Source: Magallana gigas (Eukaryota). Taken from it: 64,000 nt of DNA. This document shows positions 16,334-63,858 of the stretch, piece after piece (position 1 is the first letter of the stretch; every line of letters starts with the position of its first letter). The stretch is from NCBI RefSeq assembly GCF_963853765.1, contig NC_088853.1, positions 39,308,001 to 39,372,000 on the forward strand, in the 5' to 3' direction. Made by a program: the position numbers and the translations under genes. The notes beneath the pieces were generated by a model. That model did not search any database and was not told the DNA's origin. It saw only the letters and a program-made list of their open reading frames with translations.

Positions 16334-19300
16334 ATGTTTATTCCATACGGACAATCGATTTGGCATATCAATGTCTTCATTTTGTGGTTTTGCCTCTTGG
16401 GTGCATCTCAATCTTATGGTAGGTAATTTGCTATATAAATTTATATCCTCTATAATGTACATGAATCGTGTCAAAATGATAGTCATTGTATTCTATTCTT
16501 AAGAAAATTTATTTTTGTCATTTAGCTTCATTTCCAAGTTCCAATAAAACACAGCATGCTACAATGACAGTATTTAAAATTCTATAAAAATCATATTATC
16601 AAGATATATCTGATATCAATAAACTAGAAAATTATTTGCATGATTTTGACTCCATATTATTCAGAGGTGATGTAATTTTTTTTTTTGGGGGGGGGGGGAG
16701 GAATTGCTGTTACCCGCTTTTAAAAGAGTATATTATTTCATAACAGAGCACGGTAAAGCCTAACGCTAAGACGTTTCCAGTACACTATGTTTGTTATGAT
16801 ACCTTTTATTTTTTTTTCAATTTTTAGTCCCAATATTAACTCTGATTTTCTAAAACAACTTTAGATTTGCTCACAATTGTTGGAGAATTATGTTTGTTCG
16901 TTGATGCTTTAATTCTTTCACTGTTCATCTATTCAATAACAGTACAGAAAAACATTGAATGTCAGATCATGTTACTAGAACTTTCAACCAAATATTGACT
17001 GATTAGTGGGTTTTTTTTTTGGGGGGGGGGGGGGAGGGGCAGTTTGATGCAAAGATAAATGATGTATCATACCAAAAATCTAGCATATTAAAATACAATT
17101 GCGCAAATGCAATTTAGATTTTTGGCATTATCTTGCGTTTAACAGTTTGTATCGGGTTTTCCCGATTTTAATTTATCCTGTCATTACAAACCGTTTCTCC
17201 ATGACTTCCGGCGACGGCATCTTTTTGGACAATTTCGAAAAGATCCATATTTGTTTCTAGCCTATGCCATCATACTAAAACATTGTATCCTTATTAATTT
17301 TGCACATAGATTGTCTTACAATTTGCAATTTGAGGTTTGATTATCAACTGGTTTCAGATCCAATTTACATAACAATATGAGCATTAATAATGTAATTATC
17401 TAATTAAAACCTTCGGACCTTTTAACGGAATGATTGTTTTCAATCACATGTTCGAGCTTATAGTGGTAAATTTGAACCATATTTTTTATTTCAATTTGTT
17501 AACAGCTATCTATATTATGAACTGAAGAAATGTCGTTAATTTTTATTGCATTGTCCTTATCTCTTTTTCGCGTGCCCTGTAATCTTTAAATGAAATGAAA
17601 AATTGTAGATGCATTATTCCATGAATTTGCGTCCATTTAAATACGAATCATATGACACAGCATACTCAGTGTTTACTTTTATCACTTAATGAACTTAATC
17701 ATAACTTGTGAGATTCAACTTGCAGAAAATGTTGCTTTACACAAACGTGCATTCCAACTGAATCCGTATGACGGAACAAATAAAACCTTCGACGCAAGTA
17801 ATGCAGTAGATGGACTCAAGTCTAACTTACATTGGAATGGAGGTCAATGTGCTGTATCAGCTCTTGGAAAAGAAATCGCTGCCTGGTGGGTAAACCTCGG
17901 CAGTCTCCACATCATCCACCACATCACTGTGTATTTCAGGACAAATAATGGCATTTGGGGTAAAGTATACGAACTTTAAAAATATTAGTATCATAATGCC
18001 TGCATAAACCTTTAGAAAACACACGTAAACAGTTGATAAACCTTCTTTAAGTTACAGATTTTCTTATGCTTATGTTTATATATCAACAATAAACATTATA
18101 ATATAATAGTCCTTTGCTTCATACTAATAAAAACTGCCATAGGTGTCAGAATGGATTTTAAATGATAGAGGGAATGTACAAACTCGGCGGTTGTGTCAAA
18201 CCTGCGTATTTATGATGTTACATGTTATTGCTATGAAATAAAAAAGCACAGTGTTAGAGATAAGTGATAATTAGGAGGAACAATTGAACGTGGTAATCAG
18301 TCCATAATGACGAAAATGTAAAGTAAAATCAAGTATATATTAAAAAATTCATCCTTGTAGGGAGTTTGAAATGAATAATTACTTTGGTACTGCTTATCTT
18401 ATCAATTTTTGTAATGGACTGTATCATTTTCAGATAACAGAAACAACGCAACAGCTTCTGTTCTAGGATTTTCACTGTATGTTTCCAACACTTCAGATAG
18501 ATTACAAGGAAAATTGTGTTTCAAGGATGATCACTTTAACAGAAGCACTATACCTGCTGTTTTTAGCACGATGTGTTATGTTTTGGGACAATATGTCATC
18601 TATTACAACGAGAGACTGAAAGGGGTTTCCTATCCTAGCGATTATAATTCAGATGCTGAAAATGATTTATGTGAAGTCGAGGTGTATGGTAAGAAATGCT
18701 AACTGTTGTAACGCAAGTCCTTATAAAAAAAACTAAAGTGTTTTTCCTCGTTTTTATTTTCAATTCTCAGTACATGACTAGCAGTGATTTAATAAATATA
18801 CCATTTTGTCATTTATCGATATATGAGTATAATGATTATGTATTATTTTCATATTTGAGATCAAATATAGTTGAAAGAAAAAAAATAAGCTTTTGCGTAA
18901 GCAGAAAAACTAATTGCTTCTTTATTAATCAAAGCATTTGATATTAAATATTCTGGGTATATACTTATTAAAAGAAGGATTTCAGAGATGTTCTTAAGCA
19001 TCTAAGCATTTAAAACTGATCAAAAGTGTACACTTTTCCTCCAACGAATGTAAAAAAAAAAAGACAATTAGATTAGTACAATAATTCTGAATTATACTAT
19101 ACATTAGAAAAGCGTTGGGTTCTTAAAAACATGAAGAATTGTGATTGGTGATCTAATGTAAAAATAATACTGTCTATCTATTTTTAATTTTTCTTCAATT
19201 AACGCCTTTGTAAAACTATTAATTTTATTTCATACTGTATACATTTTTTTAAAGTTTAAATCACCGCATACAAACCCATGTTAAATGTTGTTTTTCGTTC

Positions 19301-20234
19301 GTTAGAAAACGATTTCTAAGTCGAAAGTACATATTCACATAATACGATTATTATGCAAATATACGGCGGCGTGGAAGGGCCAGATGAACAAATAAAAAGT
19401 TCTTATTTGTTCGGACAAATAAGTTATCTGTTCGGACGAATTACGATTTGTTCGGACGAATAAGTTATTTGTTCGGACGAATTACGATTTGTTCGGACGA
19501 ATTAGGATTTGTTCGGACGAATAAGTTATTTGTTCGGACGAATTAGGATTTGTTCGGACGAATTACATATTTGTTCGGATAAAATAAGTTATTTGTTCGG
19601 ACGAATAAGTTATTTGTTCGGACGAATTAGGATTTGTTCGGACGAATTAGGATTTGTTCGGACGAATTACGATTTGTTCGGACGAATAAGTTATTTGTTC
19701 GGACGAATTAGGATTTGTTCGGACGAATTACATATTTGTTCGGACAAATAAGTTATTTGTTCGGACAAATAAGTTATTTGTTCGGACGAATTAGGATTTG
19801 TTCGGACGAATTACGATTTGTTCGGACGAATTACGATTTGTTCGGACGAATAAGTTATTTGTTCGGACGAATTACGATTTGTTCGGACGAATTACATATT
19901 TGTTCGGAAAAATAAGTTATTTGTTCGGACAAATAAGTTATTTGTTCGGACGAATTACGTTTTGTTATTTGTTCGGACGAATTAGGATTTGTTCGGACGA
20001 ATTACGATTGTTCGGACGAATTAGGATTTGTTCGGACGAATAAGTTATTTGTTCGGACGAATTAGGATTTGTTCGGACGAATTAGATATTTGTTCGGACG
20101 AATTAGGATTTGTTCGGACGAATTAGATGTTAGTTCGGACAAATAACTTATTTGTTCGGACAAATAACTTATTTGTTCGGACGAATTAGGATTTGTTCGG
20201 ACGAATAAGTTATTAATAGTGGTACATGTACATG

Positions 20235-20281
<47 letters not shown>

Positions 20282-22095
20282 TCATAATCATGGATACATA
20301 AATGTGAAAAGTATATTCAGTTTACATGATCATGCGCAGATCCAGAAAAATTTACCGGGTTGGTGGTGGTGGGGGGGGGGTCTGATAGATAGTTTTGTTT
20401 GTGGGGTGGGGGTGCAAGGCCCCCCTACCACCCCGGCTCTAGATCCGCGTATAGATGTATGCCAACTGTAGCCAGCGCAGGTTTTTTCTTTGCTAACTAT
20501 AAGTTTTATTTCGCGCAATGCCAGAAGAAATGATTCCAATAGTCATAATTATATGATTCCGCAGGTGGATTTCGATTGTCGATGTTTATATTGAAATATA
20601 GTCATTCTCCTGTTTACTTGGGACACTGGACATACGAAATTATCTTTCGCCTTAACTTTATACATATACATGTATACGATCAAAGTTAACTGATATGCTT
20701 CGTGGAATTGTAATAATCGCACAATTACTTAAGTGACTTATAAAACAAACCAGTTTTTACTTATACTTTATAATATAAAGACTACATGTATATTTAGACT
20801 ACATGTATCTGCCCTGGTAATGATGTAGATGAAAGGGGGGGGGGGTCAAGCCACCCCTTTCCTTCAAATGATAAATTGCTAATAATATAGACATAGGTGT
20901 TACATGTAAACTATCTGACATGTATGCAATATCTGACATATTGTGCTGTCAAGCTCAATTTTCAAACTCTATCTATCTAAAAAAATTGGAGTTATATTAT
21001 CATGGTGCCATGGGTTTCCGATAGTCTAAAACTAATGTTAACCTTAATGGTTGTCTCATTAGTCAACTTTGAATCTATTTCATTTTTAAAATCAGACATA
21101 GCATCAAAAATCGTCGATACAAAATCAAAGTTAGTCGTCATCATATACAGTTTTTATCTATAAATAACCTGGATGCCTCATTCGACCGATGAAAATAGGC
21201 GTCAGATGTTTACGATAGTATGATTCATAAATAATATTTTTCAATGATAGTTAAGAAAAATGAGATACAACCTTTTGAAAATATTGTATAAAATTGTCAA
21301 TTGTTTTGTAAGCTTTTATTTCACCTTAAATCGTCCAATTATTTTAATTTTCCCCATAACTTGATTCAATCAGTTATGATTATTCAATCAGTTATGATTA
21401 TTGATAATGTTTTTATTTGCGCTCCTAAGATTCCAAACATAGGAAAACTTTACAAAGCCACATGATAATTTTAACATGCAAATACGTCATCAGAGGTCTA
21501 TTTGACGGACAATAAGTATTTTTATCATTAAATTCTATTTTTATTACTTTTTTGCATTATAGTTAGGATGTTGGGTTATTTTGCTGACTTTATATTATAA
21601 AGTATAAGTAAAAATTAGTTTGTTTTATAAGTCACTTAAGTAACTGTGCGATTATTACAATTCCACGAAGTATATCAGTTAACTTTGATCGTATACATGT
21701 ATATGTATAAAGTTAAGGCGAAAGATAATTTCGTATGTCCAGTGTCCCAAGTAAACAGGAGAATGACTATATTTTCAATATAAACACCGACAATCGAAAT
21801 CCACCTGCGGAATCATATAATTATGACTATTGGAATCATTTCTTCTGGCATTGCGCGAAATAACACTAAGTCTTATAGTTAGCTAAGAAAAACCTGCGCT
21901 GCCTAGAGTTGGCATACATCTATACGCGGATCTAGAGCCGGGGTGGTCGGGGGGCCTTGCACCCCCACCCCGCAAACAAAACTATCTATCAGACCTCCCC
22001 CCCCCCACCACTACCAACCCGGTAAATTTTTCTGGATCCGCGCATGATCATGTAAACTGAATATACTTTTCACATTTATGTATCCATGATTATGA

Positions 22096-22146
<51 letters not shown>

Positions 22147-24182
22147 CATGTACCACTATTAATAACTTATTCGTCCGAACAAATCCTAATTCGTCCGAAC
22201 AAATCCTAATTCGTCCGAACAAATCCTAATTCGTCCGAACAAATAAGTTATTTGTCCGAACAAATAGCTAATTCGTCCGAACAAATCCTAATTCGTCCGA
22301 ACAAATAACTTATTTGTCCGAACAAATCATAATTTGTCCGAACAAATAACTTATTTGTCCGAACAAATCCTAATTCGTCCGAACAAATCCTAGTTCGTCC
22401 GAACAAATCCTAGTACGTCCGAACAAATAACTTATTTGTCCGAACAAATAACTTATTTGGCCGAACAAATAGCTAATTCGTCCGAACAAATCGTAATTCG
22501 TCCGAACAAATAATTTATTTGTCCGAACGAATCCTAATTCGTCCGAACAAATCCTAATTCGTCCGAACAAATAACTTATTCGTCCGAACAAATAGCTAAT
22601 TCGTCCGAACGAATAAGATTATTATTTTTTCTCATCTGGCCCTTCCACGCCGCCGTACAAATATAAAAAATAAATCAACAAAAAAAAAATGCGGGTAAAG
22701 TTATGATCAATAATTTTAAAAGTATCTGTAATAAAAATCTGTAGAGGTATGTTGTAGGCTGTCCTTTACAAATAACGCATTGCGATGTCTTGGACAAAGT
22801 TGATTGTGTCTGTTTGGCCTGTAAACTTGGTTACCATGGTGATCAGTGTGAACGAGGTATATTCTTATATGCATTCATATTTTCTTAATGCCATTCATAT
22901 TTAAATACATGCATGTTGTATTACTACAAACTATCATTCCAAGACAACTTAAGCAGTTTAACAGATCTATTTACTAGTTATAAATTCAGGTATTCTTGCT
23001 CAACGCATGCGATACACTACTTAAAAAAACGACATTAGCTATCGCATATTTCAAAATACATGATTTATCTGTACATGAAAGGTAATTTGTCGTCTGGCTC
23101 ATATAGCTAGTTCGATTGATCTAGAAATATAAACCATTTTTAAAAAGTTACGTTGCTTACAGAATGGGTTTGATGATAAGTAAAAATAAGCAATGTTCGA
23201 TCTTTATGCTATAAAATTGTATATTAAGTATTGATTATTATTATCCAAAATGAATGATGCACTTTAGATGATCAAAATGTTGAATGGTTAGTTAAATATG
23301 TTATACATTAATGTTTATGCTATTGCATTGCTATCTTAAATAATCTCAATACTCACCCAAATTGATCCTAATACATTGCATACATTTATATATTTTTTTT
23401 CTTCATGAAGTTAAAATATCACAGGATAAACCTTTGCCATTTAGTGAACTGAATGTTAACTGATTGGTCTGGAAAGGTGACTGAATGGCATAGCTATGGC
23501 ATTCAATTACCTTGCAGTTACCGATCACTCACATTTCAGTTCACTGAATGGCAGAGATTCATCATGTGTATATCTTCTCAAATAAGTTTGATTTTGTATA
23601 TATTTGTCTACATTCATGCAACCTAACTTTGATTTAAAAGAAACAAAACAAATGAATGCAAATTGAAAAAAAAATCAAACCAGCTTTACTTTTTAAGTTT
23701 GTGAGATTTTGGTATAATTGTAGGGTATTTAATTGATGTAAGATTTAACATTTTATTTTAAATTGACATTTTATTCAAAATTTGTTATATCATCCTCAAC
23801 TGATGTCGAAGTTAAAAGCCAGACTCCTGTACTGCAAGGTCTGATCGGTGGCCTCAGTGTCTCGATTTTAATCATCGTTGTACTTATTCTCTATACTGTA
23901 CAAACAAGGTGAAATATGATATCAATAACTGCGAATTTTTTTTCATTTGAATATTTACAATTTGTCAATTTGACATCAATTATAAACGAAATATATTTTT
24001 TACAAACGTTTAGAATTTCAATGAGAAGGAACCCTCCATTATTGAATGCAATAGAATTAAGGAATGACGCCAACTCATGTGTTACTGGAAGCAATTATAC
24101 TGTGAATAGTTACACTGAGTTCGGATGGTCCAGTAACACTGACCCATATTATACGATCCAGGAGATGACAGGTGTAGTTTAG
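16334..24182 (+). CDS. Receptor copy A: signal peptide / F-type-lectin-like domain / EGF / TM / cytoplasmic tail
   Basis: Exons 16334-16418 (MFIPYGQSIWHINVFILWFCLLGASQSY), 17726-17959 (ENVALHKRAFQ...NAVDG...WWVNLG), 18434-18688 (...LGFSLYVSN...CEVEVY), 22758-22856 (EGF-like), 23791-23908 (TM; its acceptor is TAT instead of TAG) and 24014-24182. All frames are compatible. Confidence 0.8.
19403..20222 (+). repeat. 20/21-bp satellite array in the left arm of the foldback element
   Basis: Interspersed variants TTTGTTCGGACGAATTAGGA, TTTGTTCGGACGAATAAGTTA, TTTGTTCGGACGAATTACGA and ...TTACATA. Confidence 0.95.
20237..20278. repeat. (GA)n microsatellite, mirrored as (TC)n at about 22098-22143
   Basis: Direct inspection; lies within both foldback arms. 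Confidence 0.95.
20331..20452. mobile_element. Small MITE-like insert within the foldback arm, mirrored at about 21922-22046
   Basis: Short inverted ends CATGCGC(A/G)GATCCAG ... CTAGATCCGCGTAT around a G-run-rich core. Confidence 0.55.
22162..22618 (-). repeat. 20/21-bp satellite array in the right arm (inverted, shorter)
   Basis: Units TTCGTCCGAACAAATCCTAA and TTTGTCCGAACAAATAACTTA are reverse complements of the left-arm units. Confidence 0.95.
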
Positions 24183-26374: not shown

Positions 26375-26777
26375 TGTAGCGTTTCTATTTTCTCAACGTT
26401 TCTCCTTTTTAAAGAATAAGTCTGCGTGGTTCTCACAATTTTAATAAAAGGTAATAATCCAAGAAACATATGTATAAATTCATTCAAAACTTGTGCAATT
26501 CTAACCTACTACTCTGCTAGATAAAACCACCCGCACTGAACTTAAGCCAATCTCCCTTTATATATAACGTCTCTAGAATAACTCCTCAATCACGTGCATA
26601 ATTCACTCCTAATAATAAAATCAACTCCTCTCTTTAAAATAACTCCTCACTATGTTTCATAACAAATACAATTTAGGTCAGAGATGAGGAGTTAATATCA
26701 ATTAGTAAACAAAGTTCATACGTTAAAGAAAGAAATAAACTAGATAAAATTAAAATGAATAATATAACTTTGCTTCA
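26375..26777 (-). repeat. 3' LTR
   Basis: Matches 33437-33839; I found one substitution (26703 T vs 33765 C). Adjacent PPT GGGGGGAG on the minus strand at about 26778-26785. Confidence 0.95.
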
Positions 26778-26896
26778 CTCCCCCCTGCACAAGTTTTGAC
26801 TCCGACAAAACAATAATAAACATTGATAAACAAAACAAAACAAAATATTATACAATTACTAAAAATAGTCTGATATATATACATATATACAAAATG

Positions 26897-27288
26897 TCAC
26901 TCGGGATTTGAACTCTGTCTCTTTAGTTCCGCTAGGAAAATTGATATTTCCTCCAAAGTTCTTTGCGCAAAAATGTTCGCACTTTGTCTATCCATGTTTT
27001 CGCAAACATTAATTTCCATCGTTCTCTGTTCATTGATCACCTCACCATCTTTTATAACCGAAACACTGGTCATATTTAGTCCGATTGATCGTGTCACGAC
27101 AACTTCACGAGTATCTTCGTACACTTCCTGTTGATCGTCTTCTTCTTCATCTGATATCATGATGAAATCCATAGATATTTCATCGTTAGAATGAGCAATA
27201 GTGTCACTGTCTTGAAGTCATCTTCATTCTCATCTGACGAAATGTCACTGTAATCCGGGTTTTTAATAATTCTGTCGTTAAAATCCAT
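26897..27288 (-). CDS. Gypsy accessory acidic ORF (one apparent 1-nt frameshift near 27220)
   Basis: ATG at 27288 gives MDFNDRIIKNPDYSDISSDENEDD; a shifted frame gives QDSDTIAHSNDEISMDFIMISDEEEDDQQEV...LAELKRQSSNPE*. The two starts are 116 nt apart, one short of in-frame. Confidence 0.6.
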
Positions 27289-27307
27289 GATTTTTGGAAT
27301 AAACAGT

Positions 27308-27526
27308 TTAAAAACACAAATCAAAATCATTTATCAGCTGTTCATCGTAATCATAATGTCTATTGTGAAAATGTCTGCGCAGATTTTCTCTTCGCTTAAA
27401 AACTCTATCACAAAACATGCACTGAAATAAGTTTACATTTTCTTTGTGTTGATGGTTGAAACGTCTTTTAAAATTATCCAATCTGGTAAAAACAATTCCA
27501 CATTTATCACATAATACAGTCTTCAT
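27308..27526 (-). CDS. Gypsy accessory ORF with two C2H2 zinc fingers
   Basis: MKTVLCDKCGIVFTRLDNFKRRFNHQH ... FQCMFCDRVFKRRENLRRHFHNRH. The ATG overlaps the last pol codons. Finger 1 appears to have H>R. Confidence 0.75.
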   Translation of the reverse strand: MKTVLCDKCGIVFTRLDNFKRRFNHQHKENVNLFQCMFCDRVFKRRENLRRHFHNRHYDYDEQLINDFDLCF

Positions 27527-30500
27527 AATATCTTTGTGGCTTGCGAATGACTCTTCCCCGCATAGTTTTCTTAGGCATACCCACGGTCTGTTGATCACGT
27601 GGTTGGTCAGTTCGAGGAGGATCTTGAATTGGAATACACAACTTCGGGTTTGTCTTTGGCGCGTTAGCTTTTCCCACGCGCGGTGTTTTGGCGGCATCTT
27701 TTGAATTTGAGGAGGGATCCAGCTCAGGCGTGTTGACAGTTTTGCTCGGCATCTCTTTGAATTTGAGGAGGTGTTTCAGTTTTAACTCTGCTGTTTTTCG
27801 TATCTGGAATGATTTTATGTTGTCAGCATGGACAATGACGGGATTAAATTTTCTCGAATGTTTAATTTCAAACAACACATCACTTAATTTTTTCGTAATA
27901 ATCCATGGTCCAGTCCAGTTTCGAGCTAATTTAAGTTTTGTGCCAACAATTTGTTTGGGCTGAAATCTCCGTACAATATCACCTCCGTTATAAGTTTTCC
28001 GCACAGCTGTTTTATCATAATGTCTGTTTTGTCTGCACACTGCTCCCGAAGTTCTCTCTCTAGCGAATTTATGTACAAGCTCCAAATTTTTGCACAAATT
28101 TTTCACATATTTTGTTTCCGATATTTTCTCTCCTTTTCCGATTTCCAGAGATTCCGTTTGTAAATCTACGGGTATAGTCATCTCCGAACCAAACATCATG
28201 CGAAAAGGCGTAATTACAGTCGTTTCGTGAACTGATGAGTTTTATGCCATCACAACACAATCAATATAATCGTCCCAGTCAGTTTGTTTCACATTTATAT
28301 ACTTAGACAACATATCTTAAATTGTTCGATTGAGTCGTTCTACCATTCCGTCAGATCTTGGACGGAATGCAGTTGTTCTTGTTTTCGCTCTGTCAAACAT
28401 AGAGCACAGATGTTTAAACACTAAACTTTCAAACTGTACACCTTTATCACTGTGAAATTCGTATGGGCACCCGTATCTTTTTATCCAGCCCCGGAAAAAT
28501 ACATTAGCTATCGTTTTTGCTTCCATATTTGGTATCGGAAATATTTCCGCAAATTTACTGAAATAATCCGATATAACTAAAATGTACACATTATCAATTG
28601 CGGTATTAGGAAATGGTCCTGCTATATCTGCTGCAACTCTTTCAAATCTTCCACCAACGGTATAGGTTTCCATATAATGTCGTCTTTTTCTTCCAGGATT
28701 TTTCCGTTCTTCACATACTTCACAGGACTTCACATAATCACGAACATTTTGTCTCATCCCCGGCCAATAATATGATGAAAAGGAAGCTCTTTGCTGCGTT
28801 CTGTAAATTCCCATATGTCCTGAGGTAGGCGCATCGTGTAAATACCACATTACATCCTCGCGAAGTCTATTCGGAGTACAAATACGTAGTCTATTTTCAT
28901 CTTTTTCTGTCCAAAGAATACACAAAACATCATTATGAATTCGTAACAATTCCCAACGTGCATGCCAAAATGTACACTCTGGGTGTAAATGTGAAATGTC
29001 CTGGTACGAGGGTTTGTCTTTTCCCATTTTAAGCAACTTTAAAATAGGAAATATTCCGTCATCATTCTCTTGTGCCTTACGTATGTTCTCGTACGATAAC
29101 TCGTTTACTGGCATCTCAACACTTATGGCTCGCTTTGGTCTATTTTCCGTGCGTCCTTTCTTCTTGCTTTTTACTTCAGAACAATGGTCCTCACTAAATA
29201 AATTCACAATATTACAAATTATATTTTCTTGGTCACATATTCCACTTTCACTGATATCGTTCCTTAGTTCGTGTACATGCGATTGCTGCTTTCCATCATA
29301 AATGTCACTTAATTTTCGATTGCACTGTCTACAAACTTCTTCACTGTCGTTTGCATAATTTGACGGTAAACGCGATAAAGCGTCTGCATTACTGTGACGT
29401 TTTCCCGGTCGGTGAATAATTTTGAAATCAAACGCCGATAACTGCTGTAACCACCGACAGACTTGGCCATCTGGATCTCTAAACCTATGTAACCAGGTTA
29501 AGGAACCGTGATCAGTACGTAAAATAAATTCCCGTCCAAGAAGATAATGTTTAAAATGTTTTATAAAAAAAACAACAGCCAACATTTCCTTTCTCGTTAC
29601 ACAGTAGTTTTTCTCATGGGAATTTAAAGTTCGGCTGGCATACTGCATCACTTTTTCTTCACCATTTTGAATTTGTGACAAAACACAACCAATCGCATCA
29701 TTACTAGCATCTGTATCTAGCACAAATGGTCCACCATCTACATCTGGATATCCAAGTATAGGAGAATGTATAAGCTTATCTCGAAGTTCGTGAAAAGCAT
29801 GATCACATTCCGGCGTCCAGTTCCATACTCCATTTTTCTTAGTTAAAGCATGAAGGCACTTGGCTGTTTCTGCAAATCCTTTGACAAACTTCCGGTAATA
29901 TGACATAATTCCCAAAAATCTTCGTAAATCTGATACGTTTTAAGGAAGTCGTATGTTCCTAATTGCTTCTATTTTCTTCGGGTCTGTGTGCACACCATAT
30001 CTTGAAACTACATGTCCCAGAAATTCTACTTCCTGTCTGAAGAAAAAGCATTTCGATGGCTTTAATTTTAGGTTTGCTGAGTCCAGTCTGTCACAAACTT
30101 GATTAAGATTTTCTAAATGTTCTTGAAAACTTTTTCCAAACACAATAATGTCATCAAGATATAAAACAGCAATGTTCCACTGTAATCCACAAAGAGCTTT
30201 TTCTATTATCCTTTGGAATGTCGCCGGGGCGTTGCACAACCCAAACGGCATGACGCTATATTGATATAGTCCTCCTCTGGGAGTCGCAAATGCTGTTTTC
30301 TCCTTATCTCTCTCCGACATCTGTACTTGATGATACGCCATGTTTAAGTCTAGGGAGGTAAACCACATCGATCCAACTAAAGCGTCCAAGTTGTCATCTA
30401 TTCTTGGTATTGGATATGCGTCCTTTATCGTTCTCGAATTGAGTCTTCGATAATCCACACATACGCGCCATGTTTTGTCTTTCTTTTGCACCAAAACAAG

Positions 30501-31697
30501 CTGAGATGACCACGGACTATGGGATTTTTCTATTATTCCCAAGTCCTCCAATTTCTGAATCTCATTATCCAGAATATCACGCTTGAATAAAGGCATGTTC
30601 CGCGATGCCTCCTTGAAAGGTAGTTCGTCATTCAGAACAATATGATGTTCTCCTAAAGTTGTCTGTTCTAAGCGTCTATTAGGATCAGCAAATGTAGCAA
30701 CGCGTTTCTGCAGAAACTTCTTAAATAAACTTGCCTCTTGATCAGAGAGGTAAATCCGACCTTTTTCATACACAGGAATTAAATGAGCAGGTAATTCCTT
30801 TGGATTCTTTTCCTCCACTAAATAAACTTCCTCTGAATTCAGGCGTTCACTATTAGAAACTTTAATAACAGGAGAAAATATTGCTATTCTAGCATTTTGT
30901 TTTACTGTCACTTCTGCTCTTCCCAGATTAAACAATCTTAAATATCCGTTAAATGTTCTTGTGTTTAACAGAGTTCTTGCAACCAGCAACTTATGTTTAT
31001 GCAGAAAATCTGATAACACAACTGGTATTCCTTCACTGTTCTCCGGGTAAGTGAATTCCGTTTGGATAACAACTTCGTGTCCTGGTGGCGCAGAAATGTC
31101 CTGACTTGCTATTATCCAGTTGGTACGTCTAAGACAAGCATTATTACCAAGAACTTTAACAAACAATCCCCCATTCTCATGATCCCAATTACATCTAAAA
31201 TATGAATAAAAATCTGCTCCTAATAAATTCTGAGAAACTCTACCAACGAATACCCTTAAATCCGTTTCAAAATCATCAAAGTTTAACGGCATATGCGCTG
31301 TTCCTAGTACATATAAATCTTGGCCACTTGCAGTCACAAACTTCTTTCTTGCTGGCTCCAGCACTGGTCGATTTTCTGGAGGAATTTTATTAAATATATC
31401 TTCTGCTATGAAGGTATTTTTCGCTCCAGTGTCTACCTTCCACGTAACAAATGTACCTTGTATCAGTCCATCAACGTAGAATCCTATCTTGTTTTTACTT
31501 GCATTTATTTTATAACAAGATGGGAAATCTTCAGATTCTTCTGTCACATCTCTTCCATTTTCATCATCAACGAGTTTGTCATTAGTTGTGGTTCTTTGAT
31601 AATTAGAAGATGAAGAATCGTTATCAGAATTAGCACCAGGCCAGTCTATGTAGCCGTCCGACGCATGGCCTACTGCCTCGGCGGCGCGTCTTTTCCC
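27507..31697 (-). pseudogene. pol: Gypsy pol (protease, RT, RNase H, integrase) with three in-frame TAA stops
   Basis: Motifs KVDTGA, YLDDII, LDTDAS, HDAPTSGH...CEVC and DIAGP...HSDKG...VERLN. One reading frame, interrupted at 29940-29942, 28317-28319 and 28242-28244. Confidence 0.93.
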
Positions 31698-32932
31698 TGA
31701 GGAACTGCTCCGCCATTCTCCCTCCTTGCAACTGAATTTGTACTAGGACATTGATTTCTCAAATGACTTAATGATCCACAGGTATAACATCTCTTTCTGG
31801 TGTTATAATTCTTTCCATTTTGATAACTTTTATCAATTCCACGGGATAGTTGTTTTGGGTTGACTGTGTAGATATCCCTTCTAACTGTCTTAGAATTTTT
31901 CAATGACGGTTCCTCGCCTACCCGAATACACTCTTCTTGCATGGCTGATGTAACTGCCTCCTGAATTGTTTTCGGCCTCGTCCTCTTAACTGACATTCGG
32001 AACTCCTCATTTTCAGATCAGTTATCCAGAAACGTTTTTAAACTGTTTTCATCGACGCATGCTCTGTTTCCAGGATAAGCTCTTCTGAATAAATCTTCAA
32101 TCACTTGTCCATAATCTCTAAATGTCTCATTAACGTGTTTTCGGCGTAATTTTGCTTCTGCAATGTAACTATCCTTCAGAGCTGTATATCAAAATCTCTG
32201 ATTTAAAGCTTCTGTCAAATGCTGATAATTGCCCATGGTGTTGTCTGGAAGTCCATAAGCATATGTCTCTGCTTGGCCACGTAAAGTAGTTAACAGCACA
32301 CCCCTCTTTCTTTGTACAGTCCACTGATTTAAATTAGCAACGTTCTCAAAATATCTGAAGAATTCAGTCCAGGTAGTCGATCCATCTCCGGAAAATGTCC
32401 TTTTGACTGGAATGTTGACACTACTTTCAGTCTGATTAGTAACTTCTGGAGTTGCCAGAAAATCACTTCTACCTCTTGGAGTCGCACCCCGCACGGAACG
32501 TTGTCGATATCTTCCAGCTGTTCTTCCAGTTGATATCCAGCATTTATACAATACACTAATTAATATCACAAAAATAATCAAAAATATTAACACAATGATC
32601 AGTTCTCGTGTAGCCCACATTACTATTCCTCCAGGAAAGAACTGATAGGCGACATACAACAGAGTTGTAAAAATAGGAATCACTCCGAACCAAAATCCTA
32701 TTAATTGTCCCCATCCTGTTGAATTGCTCACATATGCGGTGCCCTCGGTTGTTGCTAGTTCTGTTTCTACAGCAGGGGTATTCAAATCTTCTCTGTACAT
32801 CGGACACACAGGAGAATCAGCTTCATTGAATTCCTTTAACAAGTTCCGACGCACGGCAGTACGCGGTGAAGATTCCGGTATATTTGTAGTTCCTCGAGGC
32901 GTAGTCATCATGTCACTATTTTCTGGTTGCAT
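31670..32932 (-). pseudogene. gag: Gypsy gag with N-terminal hydrophobic segments, CCHC knuckle and two in-frame TGA stops
   Basis: FSGDGSTTWTEFFRYFENVANLNQW capsid-like motif and CYTCGSLSHLRNQC. Stops at 32189-32191 and about 32018-32020 with frame preserved. Confidence 0.85.
31691..31697 (-). promoter_or_regulatory. Putative -1 ribosomal frameshift slippery site G GGA AAA
   Basis: X XXY YYZ heptamer in gag frame (CAG GGA AAA). The -1 frame is open and continuous with pol. A downstream GC-rich segment has GACGC...GCGTC pairing potential. Confidence 0.6.
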
Positions 32933-33048
32933 ATGCAACAAACAAAGTAAAACAACATGAGTCACTAAAACAGCACTTACAAAAATATCCAGCTTGCTAA
33001 GTTCTACTACTATTCAAACAACTAAATCTAGAAGAATTCACAGAAAGT

Positions 33049-33300
33049 TTATCGGTACGCCACACGTGTTTCTGTAAATGCTTTAATTCTGCAGCCACAG
33101 AACGGACATTTGTAAAATTCACTTTTCTTTCCGATTGCTGTAATAATGTAGTGACGATTCTCGTTGTTCTTGAACATAACAAAACAATTGGGACACTCTC
33201 TTCGGTCACTTACGTTAATTTGTCCAAGGAGAATAAGATTTCCATTTTCTACAATGTCATAATAGTTCACAAATCTTTGTCGTCCTTGATAATCCATCAC
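33049..33300 (-). CDS. Gypsy 5' accessory ORF, putative zinc ribbon (two CxxC)
   Basis: 83-aa intact ORF between PBS and gag, containing ECPNCF...x24...KCPFCGC. Confidence 0.6.
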   Translation of the reverse strand: MMDYQGRQRFVNYYDIVENGNLILLGQINVSDRRECPNCFVMFKNNENRHYIITAIGKKSEFYKCPFCGCRIKAFTETRVAYR

Positions 33301-33414
33301 TATGCACTATGCATTAATAAATCCCTCCAAAAGTAATAATAATTCCACACGTCAAAAGTTAATCAAATAATTTAAAGATTTTCACTTTAATCCATAATTA
33401 CTAATATTAAAATT

Positions 33415-33434
33415 GAATCCCACCGCTGCCACCA
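33415..33434 (-). promoter_or_regulatory. Primer-binding site complementary to tRNA-Leu
   Basis: The plus strand GAATCCCACCGCTGCCACCA equals the 3' end (with CCA) of eukaryotic tRNA-Leu of the AAG/TAG type; it lies 2 nt from the 5' LTR. Confidence 0.85.
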
Positions 33435-33436
33435 CT

Positions 33437-33839
33437 TGTAGCGTTTCTATTTTCTCAACGTTTCTCCTTTTTAAAGAATAAGTCTGCGTGGTTCTCACAA
33501 TTTTAATAAAAGGTAATAATCCAAGAAACATATGTATAAATTCATTCAAAACTTGTGCAATTCTAACCTACTACTCTGCTAGATAAAACCACCCGCACTG
33601 AACTTAAGCCAATCTCCCTTTATATATAACGTCTCTAGAATAACTCCTCAATCACGTGCATAATTCACTCCTAATAATAAAATCAACTCCTCTCTTTAAA
33701 ATAACTCCTCACTATGTTTCATAACAAATACAATTTAGGTCAGAGATGAGGAGTTAATATCAATCAGTAAACAAAGTTCATACGTTAAAGAAAGAAATAA
33801 ACTAGATAAAATTAAAATGAATAATATAACTTTGCTTCA
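33437..33839 (-). repeat. 5' LTR
   Basis: 403-bp match to 26375-26777; adjacent to the PBS. Confidence 0.95.
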
Positions 33840-34730: not shown

Positions 34731-34856
34731 CGAGTATAGTCCAATACCGACCAATACCTGAAGTGACAAAATTTTGGCACCGAAAAGGATATGAATAAAG
34801 TAAAAACCAGAGGTACCCTACAGGAAAATGTACGAATAAACTAATTTATTGATTGT

Positions 34857-41200: not shown

Positions 41201-42737
41201 GTCCAGTGTGCATCAGCGCATGATATAATTATATACAAATGAAAATAATTTATACACACAACATAAAAGTAAAATTATAATCAATTATTTTGAGATACAT
41301 CTGCAATAAAAGCGTTTGTTGTAGGTTGTCCGGTACAAACGACTCATTGCGATGTGTTTGACGCAGTTGAATGTGTCTGTCTGGCCTGTAAACCTGGTTA
41401 CCATGGTGACACGTGTAAAGGAGGTAAATTTTTATATATATATATTTATTTTTTCGTAATGCCGTTCATATTTAAATACTTGGTGTACTACTACATTCAT
41501 GGTGCACTACTTTCATTTCAAGACAACAACTTTAGCAGTTTAAAAGATGTATTTACTACTTATAAATTCAGGTATTCTTGCTCCACGCATGCAACACACT
41601 ATTAAACAATGTATACAGTTTACGCTTTTATTAGCAAAACAAAAAACAAAAACAAAAACAAAAACTTCCCAAAAAAAAAACACGACATTAGCAAGTGCAC
41701 GTATCCAAATACATGATTAATCTCCACATGAAAGGTGATTTGTCGTCTGACTCATATAACTATTTCGATTGAAACATAAACCATTTTTAAAAATTTACGT
41801 AGCATATAGAATGAATATGATCACAAGTAAAAATAAGCAATGTTCGATCGTAATGCCATACAATTATATATCATGCATTGAGTATTAATTTACAAAGAAA
41901 ATGATGCATTTTAGATGATCAAAATGTTGAATGCTTAGTTAAATATGTTATACAATGCTAATGTTATTGCAATGGTATCTTAAATAATCTTATCTGCTCA
42001 TTCAAAATGATCATAACACATTGCATACATCAATCTTCTGTCTTCATGAACTTAAAATAAATCTTTCCAAATAAGTTTGATTGTGCATATATTTATGTAC
42101 GCCATGTCACCTAACCTTGATTTGAAAAAAAAAGCAACAATAAAAGCAAATTTGAAAAATAAACCCAGCTTTATTTTTCTAGTTTGTTAGATTTTGGTAT
42201 TAATTGTGCGAATGTCATGGTGTGTTTCTCTGATGTAAGATTTTACATTTTATTTGAAATTGACATATTATTCAAAATTTGTTATAGCATCCTCAACTGA
42301 TGTCGAAGTTAAAAGCCAGACACCTGTACTGCAAGGTGTTATAGCATCCTCAACTGATGTCGAAGTTAAAAGCCAGACACCTGTACTGCAAGGTCTAATC
42401 GGTGGTCTCAGTGTCTCGATTTTGATCATAGTTGTACTTATTCTCCATATTGTACAGACAAGGTAAAATACAAAATCAAAATTGTGAATTTTATTTTATT
42501 TTTATATTACAATTTATCAATTTGAAATGAATTATAAATGAGATTTGTTTCTTACATTATTTAAGAGTTTCAATGAGAAGGAACCATCAAATATTGAATG
42601 CAATAGAATTAAGAAATGGCGCCAACTCAACAAACTCATCTGTTACTGGAAGCAATTATACTGGGAATAGTTACACTGAGTTCGGATGGTCCAGGGAGAC
42701 TGACCAGTATTCTACGGAGATGACAGGTGTAGTTTAG
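38233..42737 (+). CDS. Receptor copy B (F-type-lectin-like / EGF / TM / tail), apparently intact
   Basis: Exons 38233-38317 (MYFLFCHSICLLGVLSMLSSMLEVTEAY), 39464-39697, 40172-40426, 41325-41423, 42288 (or 42345)-42462 and 42566-42737. Canonical splice sites, open frame. Confidence 0.85.
42281..42394 (+). repeat. Perfect 57-bp tandem duplication spanning the TM-exon acceptor
   Basis: gttatagcatcctcaactgatgtcgaagttaaaagccagacacctgtactgcaaggt x2 (42281-42337, 42338-42394). Confidence 0.95.
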
Positions 42738-48981: not shown

Positions 48982-51900
48982 ATGTACTTTCTTTTCTGTC
49001 ATTCTATGTGTCTCCTTAGTGTCCTGTCTATGTTGTCCAGTATGTTAGAAGTATCAGAGGCGTATGGTGAGTTAATGTTTTCGCTTACTTTATAACAAAA
49101 AAGTTACTTTTGATCAAGATCATATTATTATTATTATTTTTATCTTATTTATCAGAATTAAATAATTATTTTAACTTTTTACCTTGTTGTGGGGGGTATA
49201 CACAAAGTGGTAACCTTATTAGGGCGTTAAGATAAGTTATTTTTTTCTATATCATCACGCATTAGACTTAATTCTTTTTGTCAACATCTTAACACTTTAT
49301 GGTACATGTATGTAACTAAGAAAAATGGTTAACCAATACACACATCAATATAATATTTAATTGACAGAGTATACCTCTTAACATATTGGAAACAAATGAT
49401 GTTTTTCCTTCTGGCACCGCCGCCACACAAAAATGACGTAATCAGCCTCAATTCTCAAATGAAGTTTAAATAAATACGCGCAAATGACCTTTGCATTTTA
49501 CTTTCTTTCTTTTTTCTTTTTGCATCATCGTTTATAACTCAGCTTGAATCGTGTTTTCCCATTATCTATCGCTGTTCCGTGACTTCCGGTGACGGAATCT
49601 ACTTGAGTCAATTTCAAAGATTCATTTTCCTTTATTTGAATATTTTGGTTTAGATACTATTTGATATAAGATCCAATTTAAAAAAAAAAATTCGAGCATC
49701 GATATTGTACCTATCTTCATCAAATGTTGAAAGATACAGACCTTTCAACGGAATGAATGTTTTCAATTGCATGTTTGAAGTTATACTTGTATATTTGAAG
49801 CATGTTCTTATTAGCATTTGTTGAAAACTACATGTAATTATATTTTGAATAGAAAAAAGGGCGATATTGTGATTTAAAATTACCTTATCTCATACCCTCC
49901 ATCCTCGGTAATGAGCAAACGATCGATTGTACATGTATTAATCCATAAATTTGTACGTGTATGTGTTTAAATACAAATCATATTATACAGTATATTCATT
50001 GTCTATCACTTAATGAACTTAATGATAATTTGTAAGATTTAACCTACAGAAAATGTTGCCTTACACAAACCTGCATTTCAATTGCATCCGTATGACAGAA
50101 ACAATAAAACATTCGACGCAACTAACGCAGTAGATGGACTAAAGTCTGACTTATCTTGGACGGGAGGTCAATGTGCTGTATCAGCTCTTGGAAAAGAAAT
50201 CGCCACCTGGTGGGTAAACCTCGGCAGACTTCACGTCATCCACCACATCACTGTGTATTTCAAGACAAATAATGGCATTTGGGGTAGGGTATACCTATAG
50301 TTAATTTATTATTTTCGAACCAGTCATCAAACAAAAATATTGATCTCGTTAAACCTGTATTAAACTTTGAAAAAAAAACATGTAAAAAGTTGAATAAAAT
50401 CTCTTTAAGTAACAGATTTTTTTTAAAAAAGATATTTTTAATGTTTCTATATGAGCTAATACATGTAAAAAAAACACTCAGAGGTTTCAGATTTATATTC
50501 AATGATTATGGGAACAAACAAACTTGGCGCTTGTGCAAAACCTGTGTTCTTACAATGTACAACATACATGAAATATGTATTGGTTTTAAATGAAATAAGG
50601 AGAATATTTAGAAATTATGTGTTCAGACAGACCATTTTACTTGGTAATCAGTCAATGATCGCGGCAATGGGAGAATCAATTAACTGTTAAAGTATTGACC
50701 CTTAAGCGGTGCTTGAAGTGAATAATTACATTTTTACAGGTTATCTAATCATTTTGGTAATAGTATATATCCTTTGCAGATTTCACAAACAATGCTACAT
50801 CCACCTTTCTAGGATTTTCAATCTATGTTTCCAACACAACAGATAGATTGCAAGGAAAATTATGTTTCAAGGATAATAACTTTAACACAAGCACTATTCC
50901 TGCAGTGTTTAACACAATATGTTATGTACAAGGACAATATGTCATCTACTACAACGAAAGACTGAAAGGGGTTACCTATCCTAGCGATTATAATTCAGAT
51001 GCTGAAAATGATTTATGTGAAGTCGAGGTGTATGGTAAGATTTGCTTACTGTGGTTACTGTGGCTACTCTAGTCTGGCGTGGCTTCCTCTTAAAGAAAAC
51101 TGAAGTGTTATTTAATTTGTAATTCTAGGAATATGATTAGTTGTAATTTTTTTTTCTCAAATCGCAATTCTCAAACATACATCTGTTTAGAAAATATTTA
51201 GTGTCACAATTCACTACTTAAAATTTTGTTTTTTATCCATTACTATTTCTGGAAATTTACTCTAGATTTTTTTTGTCTACTGTTTTAAAAGATCGGTTCA
51301 AAATACATGTATATTTACAACAGAAAATGTTAGTAAATACATATTTGGCAATTAAACGCAAATTTCAAATCCACATTGAACGTTTTGATTAAATAGTAAT
51401 GGTAAAAGATAATTTACATTATATGTTGGAAAATTAAAACTGTTCCAATTTGTTTTCAATAGGATTACTGGCTAATTCATTTCTTTTAGGTTCAATTATT
51501 ATTGAAAAAAAGTGCATCTTCAGATGATTAACGTTTCAAAAAATATTTCGTTTAAAATCATATTTATAANNNNNNNNNNNNNNNNNNNNNNNNNNNNNNN
51601 NNNNNNNNNNNNNNNNNNNNNNNNNNNNNNNNNNNNNNNNNNNNNNNNNNNNNNNNNNNNNNNNNNNNNNNNNNNNNNNNNNNNNNNNNNNNNNNNNNNN
51701 NNNNNNNNNNNNNNNNNNNNNNNNNNNNNNNNNNNNNNNNNNNNTTAGATATATTGCTTTTTTAGCTATTAAATTTGCTGGTTTCATTTGTTATATAAGA
51801 TTTTTTTATACAACACTTAACGCCTTATTTAAACAACTGATTTGATTTTCTGCTCTCTACAATTTTTTAAAGTTAGAATCACCTCATACAAACCTCATAT

Positions 51901-53430
51901 TAAATGTAGTTTGGTAAGTAATTTTTAAGTCCCACAACACAACATAACTGTAAAATTATAATCAATTATTTGAGATACATCTGCAATATAAGCGTTTGTT
52001 GTAGGTTGTCCGGTACAAACGACTCATTGCGATGTGTTTGACACAGTTGAATGTGTCTGTCTGGCCTGTAAACCTGGTTACCATGGTGACANNNNNNNNN
52101 NNNNNNNNNNNNNNNNNNNNNNNNNNNNNNNNNNNNNNNNNNNNNNNNNNNNNNNNNNNNNNNNNNNNNNNNNNNNNNNNNNNNNNNNNNNNNNNNNNNN
52201 NNNNNNNNNNNNNNNNNNNNNNNNNNTTGAATACATGGTGTACTTCTACAAACTTTTATTTCAAGACAACAAATTTAGCAGTTTAAATGATTTATTTACT
52301 ACTTATAAATTCAGGTATTCTTGCTCAGCGCATGCAATACACTATTAAACAATGTATACAGTTTACGCTTTTGATAACAAGAAAAAAAAATGAAAAAAAC
52401 GACATTAGCAAGCGCCCATATCCAAATACATGATAAATCTTCACATGAAAGGTAATTTGTCGTCTGGCTCATATAACTATTTTGGATTGATAAAGAAACA
52501 TAAACTATTTTCAAAAATTTACGTTGCATATAGAATGAATATGATCACAAGTAAAAATAAGCAATGTACAATCGTAATGCCATACAATGATATATCATGT
52601 ATTGATTATTTATTTACAAAGTAAATGATGCATTTTAGATGATCAAAATGTTGAATGCTTAGTTAAATATGTTATACAATGCTTATGTTATTGCAATGGT
52701 ATCTTAAATAATCTTATCTGCTTATTCAAAATGATCATGATACATTGCATACATCAAAATTTTTTTTTATGAACTTAAAATATATCTTTCCAAATAAGTT
52801 TGATTGTGTATATATTCATTTACGCCATGTAACCTAACCTTAAATTAAAAGAAAAGAACAACAATAAAAGCAAATTTGAAAAAAAAACTTTAAACCTGCT
52901 TTATTATTTTAAGTTTGTAAGATTTTGGAATTAATTGAACAAATGTCATGGTGTATTTATCTGATGTAAGACTTTACATTTCAATTCACGTACATAATTT
53001 GAAATTAACATTCTATTCAAAATTGTTATAGAATTCTCAACTGATGTCAAAAAAAATAACTGCACTCATGCACTGCAAGGTCTGATCGGTGGACTCAGTG
53101 TCTCGATTTTGATCATCGTTGTACTTATTCTCTATATTGTACAGACAAGGTAAAATACGATAACAATATGGTGAATTTTATTTTATTTTGATATTAAAAT
53201 TTATCAATTTGAAACCAATTATAACTGTGATTTATTTCTTACGTAATTTTAGAATTTCAATGAGAAGGAACCCTCCAATATTGAATGCAATAGAATTAAG
53301 GAATGGCGCCAACTCAGTCAACACTCTTGATGCTGGAAGCAATTATACTGTTAATAGTTACACTGAGCTCGGATGGTCCAGGATAACTGACCCATATTAT
53401 ACGATCCAAGAGATGACAGGTGTAGTTTAA
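48982..53430 (+). CDS. Receptor copy C (F-type-lectin-like / EGF / TM / ITAM-like tail)
   Basis: Exons 48982-49066, 50050-50283, 50780-51034, 52005 to about 52103 (end lies in the N gap), 53032-53149 and 53253-53430. Open frames throughout the visible sequence. Confidence 0.85.
51570..51744. other. Assembly gap (175 N)
   Basis: Run of N. Confidence 1.
52092..52226. other. Assembly gap (135 N) covering the end of the copy C EGF exon
   Basis: Run of N. Confidence 1.
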
Positions 53431-56610: not shown

Positions 56611-56714
56611 GTGACAAAATTTGAGGCACCAAAAAGGATATGAACATGAAACAAAAACCAGAGGTACCCTACAGGGAAAAAAAATGCATTCATAAATCTA
56701 CTGATTGTGACATA

Positions 56715-61441: not shown

Positions 61442-62228
61442 TAATGTAAGGATTGTTTACGATATGTACTAAAGCACTACTACATGTAGTGTAGCAAAAA
61501 CATAAATTAATGAAGCAATTTTTCTTAACATTCTTACAAAGTACTTAAGCTTCAAGGGTTACATGTTTCTCTATCTTAGGGAATTTTGACCAATGAAAAG
61601 TTGGCAATTATTTTTAATTTGAATTATGCTGTTTTATCAATTATCTCTTAAAATAATAAATCAGAAATCTTTCGTATATCGATTTGAAACATATTTCATC
61701 ATGAACGTGTACAATAAAAAGCGTGTGTGCGCAATACGATGTTATAATCTAACAGTTATGGTAAATCATTTTAAATTCATTTTTCGGATTAAATCATGAT
61801 TGGCTTATACATCTGCCAAAATAAGAATCGTGTTGCATATTGATTACGTGTTTTAACATTGAATTACAATTAAAAGAATTAGCGTTATTAAAATCTAAGA
61901 ACAGCAGCGGTAAGAAATTGCAATGCTTGCATTATTTGATTTACATTGATAAAAAGGAAGATAGGAAAATAACACAGAACCATTTTTGTATCTCATCGAT
62001 AAAAAAACAAAAACAGGAATTCCACAATTGCATCTCATCTCGAGGGAAAAAAATCATGCAATCCTTATTCCTACAAATTCTGTTTTTGTTATTCTTCAAC
62101 TTCCTTATCAATACTACGCCCCTTTATACATTTCCCCTTTAACCTTTACATTTTTTAAATCAATTTATCTTTTAAAAATCGTCAGTTTTCATCAAGATTT
62201 GAGAATACAAAGTCTGCATCATTCTACG

Positions 62229-63858
62229 ATGTACCTTCTGATTTGTCATGAGTTGGGTCTCCTTGTTGTCCTGACCATGTTGTTAAATATGTTAGAAGTA
62301 ACAGAGGCGTATGGTGAGTTAATGTTTTAGTTTACTTTATATCAAAATTCTTACTATTGATCAAGTGCATATTTTCTTTTTAATATAGTTTTATTTTATT
62401 TAACATAATTGAAAATCGTTGTTAACCCTTTCTTTTTCTTTTTCTTTTTTTTTTGGGGGGGGGGGGGGGGTGCATACAAGCTGGAAAGTGTTAACCTTTT
62501 AAGGACCTTAAGATTTGATATTATTTTAGTTTTTTTTTAGTTTTTTATAGTTATTATCATCACGAATTAGACTTGTACAGTTTCTGTCAACACCTTAACG
62601 CTTCATGGTACATTAATGTGACTAAGGAATTTGGTTAACCAATACACACATCAATTATATATTTAAATGACAGTGAATCCCTCTTAACATTTTTGAAAAA
62701 AATGATATTTTCCCTTCTGGCACTGCCGCCACCAAAAACCTAACGTACTCAGCCCCAATTCTCAACTTAAGTGTTAAAAATATCTTGGAAATTCTTAAAA
62801 TCGCCGCAACCAACTGTATTAAATATGTACTAAGTGGTGTTGGATTTTTTCAAGTTCTCAACTCTACTGAGTACATACTGATGAATGTAGATAATAAGCA
62901 TCGATGTTAGAAAAAACCGTAACGTACATGTATTACATTATATTGTCTGCTTTGATAGTACTTTATGTAATAAGTCTAAACTTATTTGATTGTTGAATAT
63001 TGTAAAACGACAATATACAATGAAGGTCTTAAATGACCCCTTCCCGCAGAGTTTCCCCTCTAAAAAGAAAATTGAAATTTCATAGTTAAATTGTACATAT
63101 ATATTTCTGAAGCACAAAAACCTGGGGGGGTTTTTCTTCATTATTATAATATTGATTCAAATGCCTTCAAACTTAATAATTTTATGAAAACATTAAAATA
63201 AACATGTATCTGTCATGTAACCATTGTTTGCAAAACTTTTTTTATTTTCTTGCAGTTTTTTTCAGTACTATTTTGAACGCGTCTCACAAATACACAATAC
63301 ATTTCAATCATCGATGAATCTATTTTAAACAAATATAGCAATCATTTTACTTGTTCAATCTACTCTGTGCATTTCCTTGTCAAAACTATTTATGTTTATA
63401 ATAAATGATTTTAAGTGTATTACAAATACCGTTGAACTTTTGATGTTAAACACTATCATTAAGTACAATCGATAAGATAAATGTTTTTTTTTTAAAGGCT
63501 TTTCATACAAGATTGAACTCTGCTTTAGAATTATTATATGATACATAAAACATTTTTTTTTTCAAATTTGAATCATAGGGTCAAAATTACATTTCCCTAA
63601 TGTTCCTGAGTTTATTTTTCCCTACAGAAAATGTTGCCCTTTACATGCCATCATATCAGAGTAACCCGTATAAAGGCAATGTTATATATGACGCAGCCAA
63701 TGCAGTTGATGGACTTAAGTCAGATCTAAGCATCGACGGTGGTCAATGCGCGGTGTCCGCAACAGGACATGAAACTGCTATCTGGAGAGTAGACCTTGGC
63801 AGCGTCCACTTCATCGATCACATCACGTTGTATTTTATGACGGATAACCAATGTTGGG
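62229..63858 (+). CDS. Receptor copy D, first two exons (divergent lectin domain); continues off the right edge
   Basis: Exon 62229-62313 (MYLLICHELGLLVVLTMLLNMLEVTEAY) and exon 63628-63858 (ENVALYMPSYQSNPYKGNVIYDAANAVDGLKSDLSIDGGQCAVSATGHETAIWRVDLG...CW). Confidence 0.8.

Follow-up and report, generated by a model that had tools for sequence, protein, structure and literature searches.

Four adjacent genes, here named A to D, on the forward strand of a 64,000-nucleotide stretch of the Magallana gigas genome (contig NC_088853.1, positions 39,308,001 to 39,372,000; hereafter the window, from whose first letter all positions are counted) constitute with high probability a tandem array of a very large family with named matches in oysters only: The encoded proteins are predicted to be type I membrane proteins with a divergent domain of the F-type lectin (F-lectin) fold that is devoid of the fucose-binding motif, A, B and C representing the short form with a single EGF-like module and D a long multi-EGF form. 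The four genes are ordinary members of a known oyster expansion that is annotated but uncharacterised; B, C and D are already listed by NCBI as uncharacterized proteins.

The window has a G+C content of ~30% and its genes are intron-rich; the gene models were derived from stop-free segments, paralog alignment and inspection of the exon boundaries. Gene A (16334..24182, + strand) comprises the exons 16334-16418 (signal peptide, A-type), 17726-17959 and 18434-18688 (together the lectin-fold domain), 22758-22856 (EGF-like module), 23812 or 23839-23908 (transmembrane segment) and 24014-24182 (tail and stop codon). Gene B (38233..42737, + strand) is composed of the exons 38233-38317, 39464-39697, 40172-40426, 41325-41423, 42288 or 42345-42462 and 42566-42737, gene C (48982..53430, + strand) of the exons 48982-49066, 50050-50283, 50780-51034, 52005-52091 (cut by undetermined bases, N), 53032-53149 and 53253-53430; of gene D (62229..63858, + strand), exon 1 (62229-62313) and exon 2 (63628-63858) are present, the remainder being located past the window end. 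The six-exon models of A and B have open frames with GT...AG at every modelled intron, and the intron phases are equal in all copies; a tblastn search for a fifth copy of the lectin-type exon across the window revealed only four copies. The four genes of the original prediction are thus real, as documented by open spliced models and by the matches of B, C and D to NCBI M. gigas proteins; its limits of 16334 and 63858 correspond to the ATG of A and the end of exon 2 of D, and the peptide motifs quoted in it were all found on the + strand, in four places, as described.

Two models of gene B are identical over their full length to the M. gigas proteins XP_065922968.1 (339 aa) and XP_065922973.1 (320 aa); these two isoforms result from a 57-bp tandem duplication (42282-42395) that copies the exon-5 acceptor and the stalk segment SSTDVEVKSQTPVLQG and thereby provides two acceptors. 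Gene C is interrupted by two assembly gaps, the first (N, 51570..51744) within intron 3 (flanks in B: 40952 and 41037), the second (N, 52092..52226) at the end of the EGF exon, from where it extends over the donor into intron 4. The second gap starts 87 nt into the EGF exon of C and, measured by the 99-nt exon of B, hides 12 nt of it; in C, the codon for the sixth Cys falls into this gap and is therefore unread. The flanks of both gaps are collinear with B, in which the equivalent segments have 84 and 60 bp; in consequence, the written gap lengths are merely nominal. On either side of the second gap, C is identical to residues 1-220 and 226-322 of XP_065922980.1, and the remainder of four codons and one split codon keeps C in frame across it. 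The 105 residues encoded by exons 1 and 2 of D match the N-terminus (residues 1-105) of the M. gigas protein P0368 (454 aa) with 100% identity; this protein contains ~27 Cys between its lectin domain and transmembrane segment, i.e. approximately four MEGF-type EGF-like modules. The proposal of four compact one-EGF receptors therefore applies to A, B and C; the annotated product of D is a multi-EGF long form.

The proteins of A, B and C share the same order of segments: a hydrophobic N-terminus of 28 residues, a domain of ~165 residues encoded by exons 2 and 3, an EGF-like module, a short stalk, a transmembrane segment and a tail. The EGF-like module possesses six Cys in A and B (the sixth of C being hidden by the gap) and matches the Pfam profile EGF_laminin below threshold (E=0.04 and 0.15); in the AlphaFold2 model it is represented by two short hairpins with a predicted local distance difference test (pLDDT) score of 73-78. 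The transmembrane helix (residues 246-268, LIGGLSVSILIIVVLIL...) is followed by the basic sequence QTR(I/V)SMRR and by a tail of ~60 residues that is disordered and contains tyrosines (NSYTEF; in A and C also PYYTIQEM). Signal peptide, single transmembrane helix and basic residues after this helix, as judged by hydrophobicity and the positive-inside pattern, are those of a type I membrane receptor. The previously described succession of signal peptide, lectin-like domain, six-Cys EGF-like module, transmembrane segment and Tyr-containing tail is consequently reproduced by the spliced models of the three genes.

The identity of the N-terminal domain is indicated by profile as well as structure comparisons. 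A family profile of 125 relatives (all residue counts given below refer to the same 125) matched F-lectin structures, i.e. FBP32 (3cqo, E=2.7e-10) and eel agglutinin (AAA, 1k12, E=7e-9), followed by SpX-1 and lectinolysin. The AlphaFold2 model of the gene B protein had block-mean pLDDT values >90 across residues 31-190; the best matches of this model in the Foldseek search of the PDB were 1k12, 3cqo, 4gwi, 3lei and 2j1r (E 1e-10 to 4e-9), lectinolysin and SpX thus being among them, with CBM32 modules ranking after the F-lectins. The target-normalised template modelling (TM) scores were 0.75-0.80 for single-domain F-lectins (1k12: E=1.7e-10, TM 0.76) and 0.43 for the two-domain 3cqo. With respect to fold and homology, the earlier designation "F-type-lectin-like" is hence confirmed.

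The motif definitions for F-lectins were taken from Vasta et al. 2017 (PMC5712786): The fucose-binding motif is HX24RXDX4(R/K), and the cation-binding motif is hhDGx. The latter is present as NAVDG in A-D, its A, V, D and G being kept in 122, 123, 124 and 121 of the 125 relatives; the x position is occupied by L or R, not by a small polar residue, and in AAA this position binds via the backbone (PMC5712786). By profile alignment, C70 corresponds to Cys50 of AAA and C186 (within LCEVEV) to Cys146; C70 and C135 occur in all relatives, C154 in 123/125 and C186 in 122/125 of them (presumed equivalents of the disulfides C50-C146 and C108-C124 of AAA). In contrast to the cation motif, the fucose motif is not found in any of A-D upon alignment to AAA and FBP32. 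The equivalent of its His52 is Val72 (Val in A-D), a position at which the relatives have V, I, L, A, M, K or G, and never His; in A, B, C and D, respectively, R79 corresponds to R, K, K and M, and D81 to N, K, N and D. At the final motif position, the seven most frequent residues of the relatives do not include a basic one (G, D and N being the commonest). By these comparisons, the domain is an F-lectin in fold and homology that has lost the fucose triad and of which canonical fucose binding would not be expected.

Jellyroll fold, AVDG cation motif, C-terminal CEVEV strand and the equivalents of Cys50-Cys146 and probably Cys108-Cys124 connect the oyster domain with AAA (1K12), FBP32 (3CQO), SpX-1 and lectinolysin. 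Unlike these, it has neither the fucose motif nor the terminal basic residue nor a vicinal Cys-Cys, and its CDR4-like loop (CDR, complementarity-determining region) exceeds theirs by ~10 residues and contains a sequon for N-glycosylation; furthermore, it is predicted to be membrane-anchored via EGF-like module and transmembrane segment, whereas F-lectins are secreted. The discoidin/F5/8 type C and CBM32 domains (PF00754, PF22633) share the galactose-binding-domain-like superfold (15-29 bits for PF22633; PF00754 below threshold) but ranked under the F-lectins in both profile and structure searches. The sperm bindin of the oyster stems from the same species, belongs to the same fold superfamily and likewise varies around the binding pocket; it is, however, a secreted acrosomal protein of F-lectin repeats, several of them with the His-Arg-Arg triad, for which positive selection has been demonstrated (PMC5712786), whereas A-D have one triad-less domain per protein, are presumably membrane-anchored and exhibit a ratio of nonsynonymous to synonymous substitution rates (dN/dS, omega) <1.

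Several observations weigh against the reading of the array as a set of F-lectin-fold membrane receptors. The Pfam scores of the domain are at or below threshold: Among the single exons, PF22633 (F5_F8_type_C_2) matched exon 2 of D with 28.7 bits (cut-off 27.8), that of A with 18.1 and that of B with 15.5 bits, exon 3 gave no Pfam match, and full-length relatives stayed below threshold. The assignments of signal peptide and topology are based on hydrophobicity and the positive-inside pattern, the tail motif PYYTIQEM of A and C is not kept in B (QYSTEM), and gene A has neither a canonical exon-5 acceptor nor an annotated product and is thus possibly inactive. The case for the four window genes as a whole is one of sequence and predicted structure.

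At the site of the exon-5 acceptor, gene A reads ttatAT versus the ttatAG used in B and C; two in-frame AGs are located downstream of it as alternative acceptors, so that gene A may use another splice site or may be inactive. No identical product of A was found among database proteins of comparable length (5.8 billion clusters including NCBI annotation). Gene A forms the edge of the array, and its exon 1 is unrelated to exon 1 of B, C and D; this exon of A (16334-16418) matched at 76-80% the first exon of two contigs without introns (1.2 kb) from the runs SRR31729890 and SRR14492801 (L001, positions 7-114, and L002, positions 29-118), which encode proteins of 322 and 323 aa with the same architecture and whose exon junctions coincide with those of the window gene models. 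These contigs demonstrate transcription of a close relative and its splicing according to the model; the evidence concerns this relative and not the four window genes. The lectin domain of the two contigs is about equally distant from those of A, B and C.

The peculiarities of gene A would be accounted for if the array were partly decaying, with A and possibly others being pseudogenes or unexpressed copies that are retained by recency only. In favor of such a decay are the AT at the canonical acceptor, the lack of an A-type protein among the clusters searched and a 3.3-kb foldback-like insertion within intron 3 of A. On the other hand, open frames are kept in all six exons of A, the A-B comparison yielded a dN/dS of 0.22, two in-frame alternative acceptors are available, and the exon 1 type of A is used by expressed relatives; we regard this explanation as doubtful.

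The reading of the array as part of a large receptor family is in line with the size and range of this family. With exon 3 of B as query, 615 clusters (50% identity), a lower bound for the family, were retrieved at E<=1e-3 and 331 at 1e-10; all named matches belonged to Ostreidae (Magallana/Crassostrea, Saccostrea, Ostrea), many of them being encoded on the same M. gigas chromosome. In oysters, the triad-less lectin-fold domain also heads an adhesion G protein-coupled receptor (GPCR; GAIN and 7tm_2 domains), receptor tyrosine phosphatases, and proteins with immunoglobulin and LDL-receptor class A domains (P0040, P0105, P0133, P0247, P0254); it behaves as a mobile extracellular module. A non-immune role, e.g. 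in adhesion, corpse clearance, settlement, shell formation or gamete interaction, with the loop differences being neutral drift after recent duplication, would agree with the adhesion GPCR and tyrosine phosphatase bodies as typical adhesion and signalling contexts, with the overall purifying selection described below and with the very recent origin of the copies B and C (synonymous divergence, dS, ~0.08). However, nothing ties A-D to any such process, and a lectin fold on a surface receptor is equally suited for the recognition of foreign glycans; this possibility is a tentative one and rather unlikely.

The original prediction had located the paralog differences mainly in short segments of the first lectin exon. 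According to the alignment to eel agglutinin, these segments are the CDR1 apex (B, YDKNNKT, 39505..39525, + strand; A, 17767-17787; C, 50091-50111; D, 63669-63689), the CDR2-like loop (B, SDLSWTG, 39559..39579, + strand; A, 17821-17841; C, 50145-50165; D, 63720-63740) and the loop downstream of the His equivalent. In A, B and C, 29 of the 166 domain residues were variable, at a proportion not significantly different between strand and non-strand positions (7/67 versus 22/99, p=0.06); similarly, the three segments named for exon 2 were not significantly enriched (6/18 versus 9/60 residues, p=0.10). Hence, with 6 of the 15 exon-2 differences inside these segments, the claim, taken literally, went too far for A, B and C. 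It was supported when the loops were defined by CDR homology, with inclusion of the CDR4-like loop, which is located where exons 2 and 3 join and was absent from the earlier list: The differences were ~3.4-fold enriched in the loops homologous to CDR1, CDR2 and CDR4 of F-lectins (15/48 versus 14/118 residues variable, p=0.006). It was also supported by 14 distinct exon-2 peptides of the subfamily, in which 12 positions had three or more states (36, 44-46, 53, 64, 66, 75, 76, 91, 102, 104), 7 of them within the 18 residues of the three segments (p=0.005, indicative only, as the sequences are related). Between D and B, the differences were equally distributed over strands and loops.

The dN/dS of the whole domain amounted to 0.22 (A-B), 0.27 (A-C) and 0.39 (B-C). 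For the CDR-like loops, values of 0.24-0.79 were obtained, elsewhere in the domain 0.09-0.26, i.e. the loops exceeded the rest by a factor of 2-7 in the three comparisons; the maximum of 0.79 rests on 6 nonsynonymous and 2 synonymous changes. No pair or partition of the three complete paralogs gave a pairwise dN/dS >1. The sites that vary among A, B and C are high-entropy positions across the whole family (Mann-Whitney p=9e-6). The loop pattern is that expected from relaxed constraint on surface loops: The paralogs would differ preferentially in the top loops because constraint on the domain is weakest there. The term "diversifying" that had been applied to the cluster is not supported by the ratios, which are below 1 throughout, and the variable sites are weakly constrained family-wide; positive selection at a few sites would nevertheless be compatible with these data.

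The original prediction of a diversifying innate recognition cluster, here taken as an innate immune repertoire with positive selection on its recognition loops in the manner of the eel F-lectin isoforms or the oyster sperm bindin, has to be judged against these data. It can draw on the enrichment of differences in the CDR1-, CDR2- and CDR4-like loops, the clustering of the multi-state positions at 44-46, 64/66, 75-76 and 102/104, the increased dN/dS of the loops relative to the remainder and the massive expansion of the family; a concentration of variation in CDR1 and CDR2 has, moreover, a precedent in the F-lectins, namely the eel isoforms (PMC5712786). In opposition to this, dN/dS remained <1 in every pair and partition with a maximum of 0.79, only three complete paralogs are present and their sequences are related, so that the counts are not independent, and relaxed constraint yields the same pattern. 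We therefore consider positive selection on an immune repertoire improbable. Its furthest extension, that the A/B/C-type genes are a germline variable recognition set with the apex positions 44-46, 64/66 and 102/104 under diversifying selection and with the triad-less fold retooled for a new ligand class across an oyster-specific family of hundreds (including the adhesion-GPCR and tyrosine-phosphatase fusions), appears very improbable.

The automatic names of the relatives include MEGF6/10/11, draper-like, CED-1-like, scavenger receptor F1/F2-like, Tie-1/angiopoietin receptor-like and FTP domain-containing. Common features of the oyster family with MEGF10/Draper/CED-1 and scavenger receptor F (SCARF) are the type I membrane topology, MEGF-type repeats in the long members (D; neighbouring exons at 7098-10976) and, within the family, short Tyr-containing tails with recurrent YxEL-type motifs (YYTI is present in the tails of A and C, not in that of B); the EGF region of the family matched the EGF repeats of Tie2 and SCARF1 in the profile comparison. 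MEGF10/Draper/SCARF, in contrast, have no N-terminal lectin-fold domain, and MEGF10/Draper/CED-1 possess many EGF repeats instead of the single atypical module of A, B and C. An EMI domain was not detected by Pfam in any exon or in the relative P0327, and the NPxY motif, which together with YxxL motifs marks the tails of MEGF10/Draper/CED-1, was absent from those of A, B and C and present in 1/60 family tails. By these differences, the genes are not orthologs of MEGF10, Draper or SCARF. A literature search covering the architecture, oyster receptors with FTP domains and the identifiers of genes and proteins yielded no specific paper.

Genes and spacers are collinear between the units of the array, the start-to-start distances being 10,749 bp (B-C), 13,247 bp (C-D) and 21,899 bp (A-B). 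B and C are recent copies, as reflected by the dS of ~0.08, A is older (dS 0.3-0.4), and D is saturated. The longer A-B distance is due to a 7,465-bp long terminal repeat (LTR) retrotransposon and the insertion of ~3.3 kb in intron 3 of A. The former, a Ty3/gypsy-type element (26375..33839, - strand), is located in the A-B spacer and is not part of the genes; it is young, with 404-bp LTRs differing by 1 mismatch, TG..CA ends and a GTAT target duplication. Its domain order is CCHC knuckle, protease, reverse transcriptase (RT), RNase H and integrase; the open reading frames (ORFs) of RT (29943-31742) and RNase H-integrase (28320-29939) share one frame with a single stop between them, and a 274-aa ORF (32192-33013) to which no function was assigned lies upstream of the CCHC part. 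The foldback-like insertion (19362-22657) consists of two arrays, inverted relative to each other, of a tandem repeat of 20/21 bp (41 bp) (19403-20214 and 22169-22616); its arms are ~90% identical out to 20780 and 21588, where they adjoin GA/CT microsatellites. It is responsible for the length of intron 3 in A (4.1 kb versus 0.9 kb in B).

An RT/RNase H remnant (34382-34840, - strand; also at ~45.2-45.8 kb and 56.2-56.7 kb) is common to the spacers of the A, B and C units, which indicates that an older retroelement fragment was duplicated along with the genes. Upstream of the array, a run of MEGF-type EGF exons (7098-10976, - strand) is 66-78% identical to the EGF parts of the family, its first EGF exon (10976-10818) corresponding to the one that relatives carry directly after their lectin domain. 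By tblastn, no lectin-type exon was detected between 10976 and 16300 beside these minus-strand exons; the run represents a gene with EGF modules only or, alternatively, a family member that is truncated.

Oysters depend on recognition molecules encoded in the germline and are known for very large expansions of lectin-like genes. If the reading of A-D as members of an F-lectin-fold receptor family is correct, their products would be displayed on the cell surface, where a ligand, not fucose in the canonical manner, would be bound through the loops atop the barrel; signalling might proceed via the tyrosine motifs of the tail, as it probably does in the multi-EGF relatives, and an immune role of A-D would be a putative one. 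For most family members, the automatic names MEGF10, draper and scavenger receptor F are misleading; they do not stand for orthology. The practical value of the analysis is modest and consists of correct gene models, the true identity of the domain and the loop positions that are worth attention. For the biology of the oyster, the family of hundreds of triad-less F-lectin-fold membrane receptors represents a concrete candidate set for surface recognition.

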